DNA from: Rebecca billardiae RCC1528
Lineage: Eukaryota > Protista > Haptophyta
Length of the DNA stretch: 64,000 nucleotides
Reading direction: 5' to 3'
Assembly: GCA_965240325.2 (NCBI GenBank)
Contig: OZ251236.1
Location: 434,001 to 498,000 of the forward strand
The notes below the pieces were generated by a model, which was not told the DNA's origin, did no database searches, and saw only the letters and a list, made by a program, of their open reading frames with translations. Numbering within the stretch: the first letter of the stretch is position 1; every line of letters starts with the position of its first letter. Below are positions 29,580-33,830 of the stretch, in pieces. A program made the translations under genes and the position numbers.

Positions 29580-30013
29580 TCATGCCGAGGAGGCGTCCGA
29601 GAGCCGAGCAAGCGACTTTGCGCGGTCCATCAGCGGCCGCGGCTTCTTGAACGCGGGCTTGGACGCGATCGCCGCGGCCAGCGAGCCGCGCCGCCCGGAC
29701 GCGCAGCTGCTCGTCGACGCGCGGCGCGTCGAGCCGCTTTGCTCGACGCTGTCGCCGCCCGCGCCCGCCTCGACGTCGGCCGGCGGACCGCGCGCGCGCC
29801 ACGCGCCGCGCGCCCCATCCTCGCCCTTCTGCACGATCGCGGTGAATGCGTGGAAGATGACGGGGTTGAACGTGTCGAGGGGGCCGTAGCCCTGCTCGAT
29901 CATCGCGAGGAGGCGCGACTTGTCGTCGGCGAGCGCGCACTTGCAATCGCGCACGTCGAAGTTGCGCACGCGCTCGAGCCAGACATCGTGCCGCGTGGAC
30001 GCGCGCGAGAGCT

Positions 30014-30048
<35 letters not shown>

Positions 30049-31575
30049 TCGCCCATGTCGAAGAGGTGGGTGAGGGAGATGCGGTCGACGGTGCCGCCCA
30101 TCTCGAGGTAGGTGAACACCTCGAGCACGCTGCGCCGAGGGGGCGGCGGCCGCGTGCGCGGCGTGCGCGTGTCAGCGCGCGCGCGCGGAGGCGGCGCCGA
30201 GCGGCGGGGCGTGTCGCGCGCGCTCATCGCTCGCGCGCTCGGCACGGCGGGCGCGCACGGCGCGCGTGCTCGCGCGCACCACCACAAGCGGTCGAGGTAC
30301 GTCTCGCCGACGAAGGCGAGCAGCCCCTCGCACCCGGCGAGGAAGACGGGCAGGCACGAGAGCGTCTCCTCGATGTGCGTCCGGCTCTCCTGCGAGATGC
30401 ACGCCTTGTCCAGCCAGACGACAGGCTCTCGCCCGTGTGAGGCGACAAAGCCTGCGCGCCACGCCTGCAGCGCGCGCCACTTGGCGTCCGCGTCGTCGTG
30501 CCAGCTGCGCGCGCAAGGGCGGGGGGCGCACGGTGTCGGCGGAGGGCCGGCGCGCACGCCGCGCACGCCGCGCACGCCGCGCACGCCGCGCGCACGAGTG
30601 AGTGACGAAGGCGTCCACCTCTCCGAACGCGCGCGGCAGCGAGCGCTCGTGCAGCGCGGGGTCGGGCGCCGGGTTGGTCAGGTCGGCCTTGCTCAGCCGG
30701 TCGAGCGGGAGGCCGCGGAAGAGGCGGCGCGCGCGCTCCTGGATGGTCTCGGGGTCGTCGCCACCGAGCAGCGAGGCGATGCACAGCGCGGCGGACATCG
30801 CCTCCCCGCGCGCCGCCACGTACGCCTGCGCGCGCACGCGCACCGACGGGTAGAGGGCAAGAGCACCCGCGAGGCACTCGAGTGCGCTGCCGCCGTGCGC
30901 GGCGTAGTAGGCGGCAGCGGGCGGCGCGACGCCGACGCCGAGCTCGATCGCGCGCGTGATCGTCTCCGACGCGCCGTCGAGCATGAACGCCAGGCCGAGC
31001 GCGTTCCACAGCGCGTCGAGCTGCGCGCGCGGTGTGCGCAGCCGCGCGAGCGTCGCCGAGAGCCGGAGGGCGAGCACGAGCGCGCTCAGCGCCTGCGCGA
31101 GCCGGCACGACCAGTGCAGGAGCAGCAGCCAGCAGGGGGGCGCGCCGGCGGGCGCGTCGGCCGAGCACGCCGCCGGGCGCATCGCCTCGAGCCGCGCGAA
31201 GAGCAGCCCGAACGTCGCCGTGACGCCGAGCGCGGCAAACGTGACGACCATCACGCCGTAGCACACGAGCGCCGCGTCCATCGGCGTGAGGGCGAGGAGC
31301 AGGAGCATCGCGCCGGGGGCGAGGCCGTAGTGCATCGCAGACACGCCCATGGGGAGGCGCATCGCGAGCGCGATGCCCGCGCCGGTGGAGAGCACCACCA
31401 GCGTCGCGCCCGCCGCCGCGAGCGGGAGCTGCACGCGCCGCCGGAAGTTGAGGCCGCACGCGTGCGCGCCGTCGAGCTTCTCGCGGATGCTCAACGCGCG
31501 CTTCGCGAGGGTCTGCGCGTCCGCGGGCTCGTCCTTCGACGTGCGCCGCCACGGCAAGACGTGGGGCGCAAGCAT
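29580..31575 (-). CDS. 6-TM membrane protein with cytosolic TIR-like domain (~584 aa; introns 30505-30595 and 30130-30279)
   Basis: Spliced product DAFVTHSWHDDADAKW...VWLDKACISQ...LPVFLAGCEGLLAFVGETYLDRLWCVLEVF. Both introns are GTGCG...GCAG and their removal restores the HSW and WCVLE motifs; six hydrophobic segments upstream. Start codon is the most plausible ATG. Confidence 0.82.
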
Positions 31576-31943
31576 GGCGCCGAGCGCGAGCACCTTGCTC
31601 GGCGGCCGAGCAGCTGCTTCAAGCTGCCCTGCCCACCTCTGCACCTCTACCCATCAAGCCCGCCTGGCCGGGCGCGCGCCTGCCCACCCGTTCGTACTCT
31701 CGACTCGATCGGCGTCTCGTCGTCGTCAGAATCCAATAGAGGGTGGGTATTGCTGGCCGCCTGGCCACTTCGTGGCTATGGTATCAATCAATCATCATGA
31801 TGAGGCCGCCGCCGTTCATCAGCGCTCATATCATATTATTATGAGCCCGCTCCGGGCTGGTATCTGAACCCGCGCCTGGGTAAACATTGTTCGCGGACAC
31901 GCACGGGGCTCCAATTCAGCGCAGCGCCCCAGCCCACCGCAGC

Positions 31944-33830
31944 ATGCGGCGGGCCGGCGCTGACGCTGGCGCCGAGCGCCTGCCACCCGTGTCGAGAGCG
32001 ATGCCTGACCCCGTGCCGCCGAGCCTGCCGCCTAGTCGGACGGCCGCGGGCAGGCTGCCCCGCATCGGCGCCGCAGAGCACTCGCACTCGCACTCGCCCG
32101 CGCGCGGGGCGCGCAGATCGTCCGGCGCGCACTTTGAGCGCGCCGGCGATGGCGAGCGCGTGGGCGAGGAGCGCGTGAAGCAGCTCCTGCTCGGCGTGCA
32201 GTTCTTCCGCTCCGCGTTGGCGTCCGAGCTCGGCGCGCTCCTGCAGCACGTCGACCAGATCGTCGTCGAGCGCTACGCCCAGCTGCTGCGCGAAGGCACG
32301 CTCGGGCACGTCGCGCACTTCTTCTTTGTGATCGTCTCGGGCGAGGTGGAGGTGTGGAACGCGCGGGGCTTCTCGATCCACCTGGGCGCGGGGCGGTGCT
32401 TCGGCGAGTCCGCCCTCTCCGAGAACCCGTACCCGCGCAGCCACTCCGTCACCGTCACGCGCCGCGCGCTGCTGCTCCGGCTCAACTCGCTCGAGCTGTG
32501 CGCGAGCGCGACGCTCCGGCGGCTGCTCAAGCGCGAGCGGCCGAAGATCGAGCGCAGGATCATCGGCAACCTGCTGTTCAGCCTGCCCTTCTTCGGCGGG
32601 CTCGCGCCCGAGGTCGTCGACGAGATCTGCCACCTCTTCACCTGCCGCGACGAGATCGGCGGCGTCGCGCTCTGCACCGAGGGCGACGCGGACTCGCGCG
32701 AGATGTTCTTTGTCGCGAACGGCGCGGTGGGCGTGTTCAAGCACGGCGCGCGCGTCTCGACGATTCGGCACACGGACTCGACGCCGTGGGTGGGCGAGCG
32801 CGCGCTGCTGGTGCACAAGCCGCGCGCGGCGTCGCTCGTCACCGTCGAGCCCACGCGCCTCCTCGCCCTGCACGCCGACCAGCTGCCCGAGCTGCTGCGC
32901 GCCGTGCCGACCATCCACGGCATCTTCCGCACGCAGGACCGCTTCTACGCGGTGAGCAGCGTGGACATGCTCGGCGAGAGGGCGGCGCCGCCGGACATCG
33001 AGGCGCAGGCGACGTCGTTCAGCCGGCGGCGGGGCCAGGTGCTCGTCGCGGCTGCGCTCGGGGACCGCGCGGACGCCGCGGGCGGCGCCGCCGCGGCGAA
33101 GGGCGGCGGCGCGCGCCGGCCGAGCGAGGCGCGCACGGAGGGCAGGCCGCGCCGCGCCGCTGCGCAGCGCGCGACCCACGCGCCCGCGCGCGCGACCCAC
33201 CCCGTCGGACGCCGGCGGCCCGGCCAGCCGAGATCCACGGCCGCCGACCGACTGCTGGACGAGCTCGAGCTGCTGGAGCCTGAGCCGCAGCCGCTGCCAG
33301 CGGACGCGGAGCAGGCGGCGGCCATGCTGGCACCGGTCGTCTCCTCCACCCTGCTGGCCAGCGCGCGCAGCTGGAGGCCGGGCGGAGAGGGAACGCCGAT
33401 CGAGGGTGGCGGCGCGCAGCCGAGCGGGCTGCGTGCTCCGCGCTCCGCCCTGTTCGAGCTCGCGACCACCGACGCGTTCGACCCGGCCGAGGCGATCCGA
33501 CAGGGCCCGGATGCGCACGAGGGCTGGCACGTCGCGCTCGAGAGCAACTTCTTCGCACGGCGCGAGGCCTTCCGCGTGGACCAGGAGGCGCGCGTGACGC
33601 GCGAGGCCACCGAGCGGAGCCTGTGGCTCCACAGCACGCGGCCCTCGCGACACGCCGCCGGCGACGGTGGTACTCGGCCGCACGTCGGCGCGAGCCCGGT
33701 GGCCGCCGCTGCGTCGAAGCAGGCGACGCTGCCGCCGCTGCCGCCACTCGCAGCGGCAGCATCGTTGTCGCCCTCCGTGGGTCAGCCGGGCGGCGCGCGG
33801 CACGGCCGTCGGTTCCGCCAAGCCGGTTAA
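31944..33830 (+). CDS. Protein with two cyclic-nucleotide-binding (CNB) domains and a low-complexity C-terminus
   Basis: FFFVIVSGEVEV..LGAGRCFGESALSENPYPRSHSV and MFFVANGAVGV..WVGERALLVHKPRAASLV phosphate-binding cassettes; start ATG 31944 or 32001. Confidence 0.85.
   Translation: MRRAGADAGAERLPPVSRAMPDPVPPSLPPSRTAAGRLPRIGAAEHSHSHSPARGARRSSGAHFERAGDGERVGEERVKQLLLGVQFFRSALASELGALLQHVDQIVVERYAQLLREGTLGHVAHFFFVIVSGEVEVWNARGFSIHLGAGRCFGESALSENPYPRSHSVTVTRRALLLRLNSLELCASATLRRLLKRERPKIERRIIGNLLFSLPFFGGLAPEVVDEICHLFTCRDEIGGVALCTEGDADSREMFFVANGAVGVFKHGARVSTIRHTDSTPWVGERALLVHKPRAASLVTVEPTRLLALHADQLPELLRAVPTIHGIFRTQDRFYAVSSVDMLGERAAPPDIEAQATSFSRRRGQVLVAAALGDRADAAGGAAAAKGGGARRPSEARTEGRPRRAAAQRATHAPARATHPVGRRRPGQPRSTAADRLLDELELLEPEPQPLPADAEQAAAMLAPVVSSTLLASARSWRPGGEGTPIEGGGAQPSGLRAPRSALFELATTDAFDPAEAIRQGPDAHEGWHVALESNFFARREAFRVDQEARVTREATERSLWLHSTRPSRHAAGDGGTRPHVGASPVAAAASKQATLPPLPPLAAAASLSPSVGQPGGARHGRRFRQAG

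Follow-up and report, generated by a model that had tools for sequence, protein, structure and literature searches.

A lectin-less six-helix membrane protein with a TIR/HET-like domain as a probable ordinary member of a large gene family in the haptophyte Rebecca billardiae

The window analysed here, a stretch of 64,000 nucleotides from the haptophyte Rebecca billardiae RCC1528 (assembly GCA_965240325.2, contig OZ251236.1, positions 434,001 to 498,000), carries on its minus strand a three-exon gene whose predicted product combines six membrane helices with a domain that has features of both TIR and the fungal domain HET. The comparisons presented below make it probable that this gene is intact and belongs, as an ordinary member, to an algal family of TIR-fold membrane proteins that is very large and expanded in its lineage and in which the absence of a lectin is the default, and that its second intron is a constitutive one whose freedom from stop codons arose by chance. 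An earlier note on this DNA had instead described the gene as the second member of a membrane TIR family, a lectin-less helper of the lectin-bearing gene at 53.8–56.8 kb of the same window, and had seen in the stop-free intron a possible off switch. The parts of the gene are as follows, in window coordinates:

31575..29580, minus strand: whole gene in three exons; the product has six membrane helices and a TIR/HET-like domain, ends in a short tail and is lectin-less
31575..30596, minus strand: exon 1, from the ATG at 31575-31573, 326 codons and 2 nucleotides
30853..31431, minus strand: predicted six-helix membrane bundle, residues ~49-241, with helices at 49-73, 75-95, 101-136, 148-177, 182-214 and 220-241
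30595..30505, minus strand: intron 1, 91 nucleotides, GTGCGCGCGG...GCGCGCAG (GTGCGCG...GCGCAG), phase 2 in the Ser codon of H-S/W
30504..30280, minus strand: exon 2, coding for the TIR/HET-like core, WHDDADAKW...GREPVVWLDKACISQ...LPVFLAGC...YLDRLW and the TG of the Cys codon
30279..30130, minus strand: intron 2, 150 nucleotides, 86% GC, GT..AG, GTGCGCGCGA...CGGCGCAG (GTGCGCG...GGCGCAG), splitting the Cys codon of W-C-V-L-E in phase 2
30120..30284, minus strand: W-x-x-x-E signature, with W at 30284-30282, C at 30281-30280 and 30129, V-L at 30128-30123 and E at 30122-30120
30129..29580, minus strand: exon 3, opening with the third base of the split Cys codon, followed by VLEVFTYLEMGG... and the rest of the TIR-like domain to FNPVIFHAFTAIV, the tail and the TGA at 29582-29580

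The size of the family emerges from searches with the core exon of the gene (exon 2, 74 residues), which recover at least 152 matches from the alga's own 72 Mb genome, a number that is to be read as a lower bound; about 95 of these are full length, with other copies matching at expectation values (E) down to 2e-26. The membrane module encoded by exon 1 has 68 homologous places in the same genome, and the lectin domain of the other window gene (C-type, PF00059, E 1.4e-9) has 21 matches, 19 of which share their strand with a family domain and lie 0.7–2.7 kb downstream of it. This genome-wide count of the domain, the module and the C-terminal fusion, which the earlier note had proposed, upholds the paralogy of the two window genes but not the description of the gene as the second of its kind, for the copies number well over a hundred. 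Among the six-helix members, roughly 30% come with the lectin and ~70% without it.

Beyond this genome, a profile of 29 family domains run against a library of 1.84 billion proteins retrieves, at E<=0.001, the representatives of 5,898 clusters, and 1,127 of these reach E<=1e-30. The public relatives discussed here are drawn from the best 150 profile matches and four cluster members, of which 152 carry the motif R-x-W-x-x-x-E. Most are unnamed metagenome or run-assembly proteins, while one, from the dinoflagellate Gymnodinium smaydae, is a Trinity transcript and one carries Lectin_C; in 150 of the 152 no hydrophobic helix follows the domain, and the stretch between the RLW motif and the C-terminus has a median length of 120 residues. 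Because the majority of the genome's six-helix members and nearly all of these public relatives are thus without the lectin, the lectin-less form can be seen as the default architecture and the lectin fusion as a minority derivative. Hence a membrane TIR family with lectin-fused and lectin-less members does exist, as the earlier note had supposed, but the lectin-less form, being the prevalent one, is not a special helper.

The family is large, lineage-expanded and diversifying, with several alternative sensor-type fusions, namely the lectin and, in a cluster of the ESM Atlas, a heme NO-binding domain. In the latter, a haptophyte cluster of 774 residues, the heme NO-binding domain (HNOB, PF07700) is joined to a TIR/HET-like domain (template modelling (TM) score 0.79), and a metagenomic protein of 1110 residues (P0001) carries two copies of the TIR/HET-like domain. 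Within the genome, two loci (L002, G000:C11:494020-494232, minus strand; L003, C11:497863-498075, plus strand) have identical core exons and identical 119-nucleotide introns in inverted orientation, 3.6 kb apart, the product of a palindromic duplication or a gene conversion that took place very recently.

A comparison of the two window genes bears on the first half of the helper proposal. The lectin gene, like ~18 other lectin-bearing paralogues, shares with the lectin-less gene the six-helix module, the TIR/HET-like domain and the position of intron 1, but it has a seventh helix and a C-type lectin and is without an intron in the Cys codon, whereas the lectin-less gene shows the reverse. That the two should form a sensor and its helper, with regulated retention of intron 2 yielding a catalytically dead full-length isoform as an off switch, appears very improbable. 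TIR domains generally act by self-association, which would accommodate such a partnership; however, the two genes are separated by 25 kb that hold other genes, and their identity is 55% in the core exon, where the lectin gene ranks only ~37th in the match list, and 31% over exon 1. Nor are they sisters in a tree of the core exon (66 segments, 76 columns and many unresolved forks), which shows the scatter of intron and lectin but not the order of events: the lectin gene groups there with two other loci (L026 and L018), and the lectin-bearing copies are scattered. Further, at least 45 lectin-less six-helix members stand against ~19 lectin-fused ones. A one-to-one pairing of sensor and helper is accordingly not supported.

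The second half of that proposal concerns intron 2. A reading of both strands confirms that it is 150 nucleotides long, divides the Cys codon of WCVLE and is in frame without a stop, as the earlier note had it. Exon 2 ends in ...CGC TTG TGG TG and exon 3 starts with C GTG CTC GAG; since the Cys codon is split in this way, R-L-W-C-V-L-E becomes contiguous only once the intron is spliced. The Trp and the Glu of the signature therefore lie on either side of the intron, which speaks for a switch: read-through adds 50 Arg/Pro/Ala-rich residues with no stop, and it is reasonable, as a matter of structural logic, that retention would part the two conserved residues and that the domain would then probably be inactive.

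In the wider family, the codon after the conserved R-L-W was surveyed at 68 paralogue loci. At 49 of them there is no intron, and the sequence continues in frame as [C/A/T/P]-x-x-E; at least 11, including the gene discussed here, have a GT...AG intron at one and the same point, directly behind the TG of the Cys codon, and all of these resume with V-[VIML]-E-[LV]-F; and at a few further loci the intron is shifted by a codon or the site is not resolved. The 11 introns measure 150, 119, 119, 187, 120, 132, 137, 90, 98, 100 and 225 nucleotides. Five are multiples of three, but three of these five start with GTGAGC and would on retention produce TGG-TGA, i.e., an immediate stop. Only two of the 11 can be read through when retained, that of the present gene and the 90-nucleotide intron of one other locus (L016), which is likewise in frame and stop-free at the same site, whereas the remaining nine would bring a frameshift or a stop. 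A retention switch would be expected to show in an open retained frame conserved among relatives or in RNA, and the two stop-free introns encode peptides that are alike only in the residues imposed by the splice consensus.

Base composition offers a probable account of the open frame. When the 150 nucleotides of intron 2, with their 86% GC, are shuffled, 79% of the resulting sequences are free of stops in the retained frame, so that the chance of an intron being both a multiple of three and open is ~0.26 (1/3 x 0.79), or about one in four. An in-frame, stop-free intron of such GC content is thus not evidence of a regulatory isoform, and caution is due with similar retention-switch readings in the same genome.

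That the segment at 30130-30279 is a real intron follows from several observations: its splice signals are canonical and identical to those of intron 1; its removal restores the family motif in register; no similar insertion is found in the 49 intron-free paralogues or in 150 public relatives; and ten other copies need a removal at this very point to keep their frame or to avoid a stop. The public relatives agree with the spliced form, the Trp being followed by Cys, and the motif being contiguous, in 150 of the 152. The intron-bearing copies are scattered in the core-exon tree, with three to six changes needed to explain them. In one clade supported at 98/97, three loci (L007, L012 and L016) have the Cys-codon intron, while the near-identical L009-L011 and L013 are without it. 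Such scattered presence within near-identical copies suggests an inherited intron that has been repeatedly lost or occasionally gained rather than a conserved regulatory element. The pairs of presence and absence (L016 against L013, and L007/L012 against L009-L011, on G000 C3, C8, C38, C27 and C12), which differ in this intron only, thus point to recent loss or gain. Intron 2 would accordingly appear to be a normal GT-AG intron of the constitutive type, inherited at a position used across the family, and its stop-free length of 150 nucleotides a chance result of the extreme GC content.

As to the gene itself, the three-exon layout, the motifs and the absence of a lectin that had been described earlier are all present in the sequence, the TIR-like domain being followed by a short tail only. 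The motifs comprise LALTPMDA, ARGEAMSAALCIASLLGG, HS/WHD across intron 1, WLDKACISQ and FDVRDCKCALADDKSRLLAMIEQGYGPLDTFN, and the same set occurs in the gene at 53.8–56.8 kb. The product of exon 1 comprises an amphipathic helix at the N-terminus, the six helices of the membrane bundle, three short ones (ARGE..SAA..ASL.GG) and, as the first strand of the TIR-like domain, VDAFVTHS; in paralogues free of intron 1, the corresponding ...DAFVSHSWHDD runs uninterrupted in one frame. The spliced product would have a length of ~584 residues. Its C-terminal tail (29583-29840) is a disordered, low-complexity stretch of 85 residues, for which a Pfam search gave no match. There is no lectin or seventh helix 3' of the stop codon, where all three minus-strand frames have stops between ~29000 and 29580, and a tblastn search of the region 3' of the stop, in which the C-terminal half of the lectin gene's product served as query, found nothing significant. 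Exon 3 also contains a run of the hexamer GCGCCC (30019-30048) that encodes (Gly-Ala)5 in a loop of the TIR-like domain, a coding microsatellite missing there in most paralogues.

A family this large, with signs of turnover, invites the suspicion that any given member is an unexpressed or decaying copy. Some copies do carry in-frame stops, such as those at C7:3805837 (five TGA codons) and at C7:129264 and C3:4078327 (one TGA each). For the present gene a pseudogene state is nevertheless improbable: all three exons are open, both introns are canonical, the near-invariant residues of the family (L, W, R, P, W-D-C, P, L, G, R-W-E, G, F) are all kept, and exon 1 is modelled with a predicted local distance difference test score (pLDDT) of 89.

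The nature of the domain was approached through a structural model of an intron-free paralogue (L025), built with an alignment of 29 rows, rather than of the gene's own joined exons. This model (pLDDT 87.1, predicted TM score (pTM) 0.81) has its strands and helices in the order of a TIR domain. Foldseek matches it in the PDB almost only to TIR domains, with RUN1 first (E 7.5e-4), followed by RPP1, RPS4, SPARTA, TLR10, TRAM, ThsB, AbTir and SARM1; the top matches RUN1, RPP1, RPS4, SPARTA and TLR10 range from E 7.5e-4 to 4e-3 at a probability of ~1.0, and the TIR chains that fill the head of the list have probabilities of 0.97–1.0 and TM scores of 0.40–0.49. The VIA list, from a search independent of Foldseek, is likewise headed by TIR domains, namely RPP1 (Z 9.5), SARM1 (9.4), IL-18Rbeta (9.2), TIR-1 (9.1), ThsB (9.0) and MyD88 (8.3), the TIR matches falling at Z 8.0–9.5 over 105–131 aligned residues. 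With TIR chains at the top of both lists, the earlier identification of a TIR-type domain is borne out on the model of this paralogue. In the ESM Atlas, the nearest clusters come from haptophytes and bear the automatic labels 'heterokaryon incompatibility domain-containing' and 'TIR domain-containing', the first of these being the nearest of all; canonical TIR clusters follow at TM 0.55–0.61 and a fungal NLR-like cluster at TM 0.63.

The sequence of the domain points in both directions. On the side of TIR (PF01582/PF13676; e.g., RUN1, RPP1, RPS4, SARM1 and ThsB), it shares the predicted beta-alpha sandwich with the same order of strands and helices; its D-A-F-V-x-H-S resembles D-x-F-I-S-Y, and its W-C-x-x-E at the start of helix C resembles the W-C-x-x-E-L of plant and Toll-like TIRs. 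The best PDB match by sequence is the TIR of TLR15/TLR2 (E 0.68), where D-A-F-V-x-H-S pairs with DAFISYS and L-W-C-x-x-E-L with CWCQYEL. On the side of HET (PF06985), the blocks W-I-D-x-x-C-I-N-Q and R-x-W-x-x-Q-E have their counterparts in WLDKACISQ and RLWCVLE, the general pattern being W-[ILF]-D-x-x-C-I-x-Q followed by R-x-W-x-x-x-E. In TIRs that cleave NAD+, a conserved Glu at the start of helix C is the catalytic residue. Across the family alignment of 29 domains, W94 and E98 are conserved in at least 90%, while the presence of the Glu in all 152 motif-bearing public relatives is a consequence of the search pattern R-x-W-x-x-x-E itself. In an alignment by hhalign to eight canonical TIR_2 domains of the same genome, the W-L-D and the Glu of the family fall on the invariant D and E of those domains, and the register of the Glu agrees between these and TLR15/TLR2, both alignments being statistically weak (16% probability and E 0.68, respectively).

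The domain also differs from the known systems. Unlike recognised TIR domains, no family member reaches the Pfam TIR threshold, and the domain rides on a six-helix membrane module in place of NB-ARC/LRR, SAM/ARM or a single-pass receptor; whereas fungal HET is soluble or NLR-linked, the domain of this family is anchored in a membrane, and every family member tested falls below the Pfam cut-off. Since neither curated threshold is reached, the domain is not filed in Pfam under TIR or HET. HET is the cell-death effector of fungal heterokaryon incompatibility, and we know of no heterokaryon biology in the alga. Taken together, the model and the motifs favour a domain that has the fold of a TIR and carries sequence blocks like those of HET, in line with the published relationship between HET and TIR and with the report of HET homologues in Haptophyceae (PMC4986451).

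The genome also has canonical TIR_2 domains, at nine loci above the Pfam cut-off, none of which comes from the HET-like family. They are separate genes that sit in very long open frames of 888-1869 codons (L071-L079, including G000 C13:293189, C5:1949398, C34:1015527, C13:1545865 and C10:3069773).

The membrane module was modelled by AF2 from exon 1 with 35 paralogue rows (pLDDT 89.3, pTM 0.83), which returned the N-terminal amphipathic helix, six long helices and three short ones, while hydropathy gives four strong and two weaker hydrophobic segments. Helix 1 is preceded, and helices 4 and 6 are each followed, by a stretch rich in Arg and Lys; by the positive-inside rule, these stretches suggest that both ends would be cytosolic. 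A word-index protein search with exon 1 (residues 1-326) found nothing at E<=0.001, and the module was traced instead through the genome's own paralogues and the public matches of the domain profile.

Several results weigh against the picture of an ordinary TIR-fold membrane protein and have to be set beside those above. The structural scores are moderate (Z 8–9.5, TM ~0.48), with flavodoxin-like nucleoside 2-deoxyribosyltransferases coming next at Z 7–8. Pfam HET on exon 2 scores 13.7 bits (E 0.079), below the gathering cut-off of 22.5 bits, in an alignment that spans positions 44-66 of the HET profile; searches of each exon and of the read-through open reading frame (exon 2, intron 2 and exon 3) gave the same sub-threshold HET match and no TIR match. 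Among the 29 family members, HET appears below threshold in nine (best E 0.0011) and TIR_2 in one (E 0.0017), and the comparison of the family with the eight canonical TIR_2 domains reaches a probability of 16% at E 0.0016. A genome-wide Pfam search for HET yielded no match, which is weak evidence in that the control genomes are equally empty. For the membrane module, the fold search returned no meaningful solved relative, the best Foldseek match standing at E 0.28 and the best VIA match at Z 8.8, to designed or generic helical bundles and below the level that is meaningful for helical proteins. Finally, enzymatic activity, topology and the mode of activation are putative, and the expression and splicing of the gene are inferred from comparison.

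Within the same gene and family, a different view may be taken of what the domain does. It is possible, if rather unlikely, that it is non-enzymatic and acts as a homotypic adaptor or death-fold scaffold, the conserved Glu being structural. A non-enzymatic adaptor role has been proposed for fungal HET and is seen for the TIRs of vertebrate TLRs and MyD88. The W-x-D-x-x-C-I-x-Q blocks of the family are nearer to HET than to catalytic TIRs, the best PDB match by sequence is the non-enzymatic TIR of a TLR, and the TIRs of MyD88, TRAM, TRIF and the IL-1R family are among the structural matches; HET, moreover, has been put forward in print as an adaptor-type domain (PMC4986451). Against these stand the Trp...Glu pair, kept with its four-residue spacing in nearly all members, and the presence of the catalytic TIRs RUN1, RPP1, SARM1 and ThsB among the top structural matches; many TIRs first taken for adaptors are, moreover, reported to have turned out catalytic.

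On the reading of the gene as an ordinary TIR-fold membrane protein, the membrane module would anchor the protein and would probably gate or cluster it. Clustering, or a conformational change of the module, would bring together the TIR/HET-like domains, which are probably cytosolic; these may then cleave NAD(P)+ or a related nucleotide by means of the conserved Trp...Glu pair, or else form an assembly platform, with a defence or cell-death signal as the presumed output. It is doubtful, though worth considering, that the six-helix module is itself a sensor or a pore-forming effector, which would make the lectin-less protein a self-contained membrane device of immunity or cell death. If this were true, the protein would be a eukaryotic counterpart of the bacterial abortive-infection proteins that combine a TIR with a membrane effector, and such devices would have been massively diversified in haptophytes against giant viruses.

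A parallel might be struck with the TIR-domain genes of the haptophyte Gephyrocapsa huxleyi, which are induced by virus infection and in resistant cells (PMC12489294). Like the present gene, those associated with infection by, and resistance to, the virus EhV belong to a haptophyte, have a predicted intracellular TIR fold with a conserved Glu, in some cases with membrane or extracellular regions, and are without nucleotide-binding-site or leucine-rich-repeat (NBS/LRR) parts; unlike it, they were chosen by HHsuite matches to Pfam TIR families and have expression data. Because the G. huxleyi genes are virus-induced (PMC12489294), an antiviral role is plausible, although nothing ties the present gene to it.

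The type of domain has been in the literature since 2014. What is new here is the census that makes the lectin-less form the default, the history of the Cys-codon intron across the family and the calculation of the chance of an open frame. The family numbers more than 100 copies in this genome and has cluster representatives in the thousands in public data, chiefly from haptophyte-like marine algae. It may be part of the little-known innate immunity of bloom-forming algae against viruses; the single gene adds little beyond that. To our knowledge, the family has never been studied experimentally.

Two neighbours of the gene deserve mention. At 31887-33830 on the plus strand, head-to-head with it and ~300 bp from its ATG, an open frame encodes two cyclic-nucleotide-binding domains (PF00027, E 2.4e-18). 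Bacterial Pycsar effectors couple the sensing of cyclic nucleotides to TIR or membrane modules; the adjacency seen here may be due to chance. On the other side, the stretch 6000-28100 of the window is a region of ~22 kb with ~83% GC and a strong GC skew of +0.42, in which open reading frames of >3,000 codons are found on both strands. Its minus-strand frame is filled with proline-rich repeats of the SPPPP/PSPPP type and looks like a giant gene of the extensin or hydroxyproline-rich glycoprotein (HRGP) kind, placed directly downstream of the TIR-like gene.

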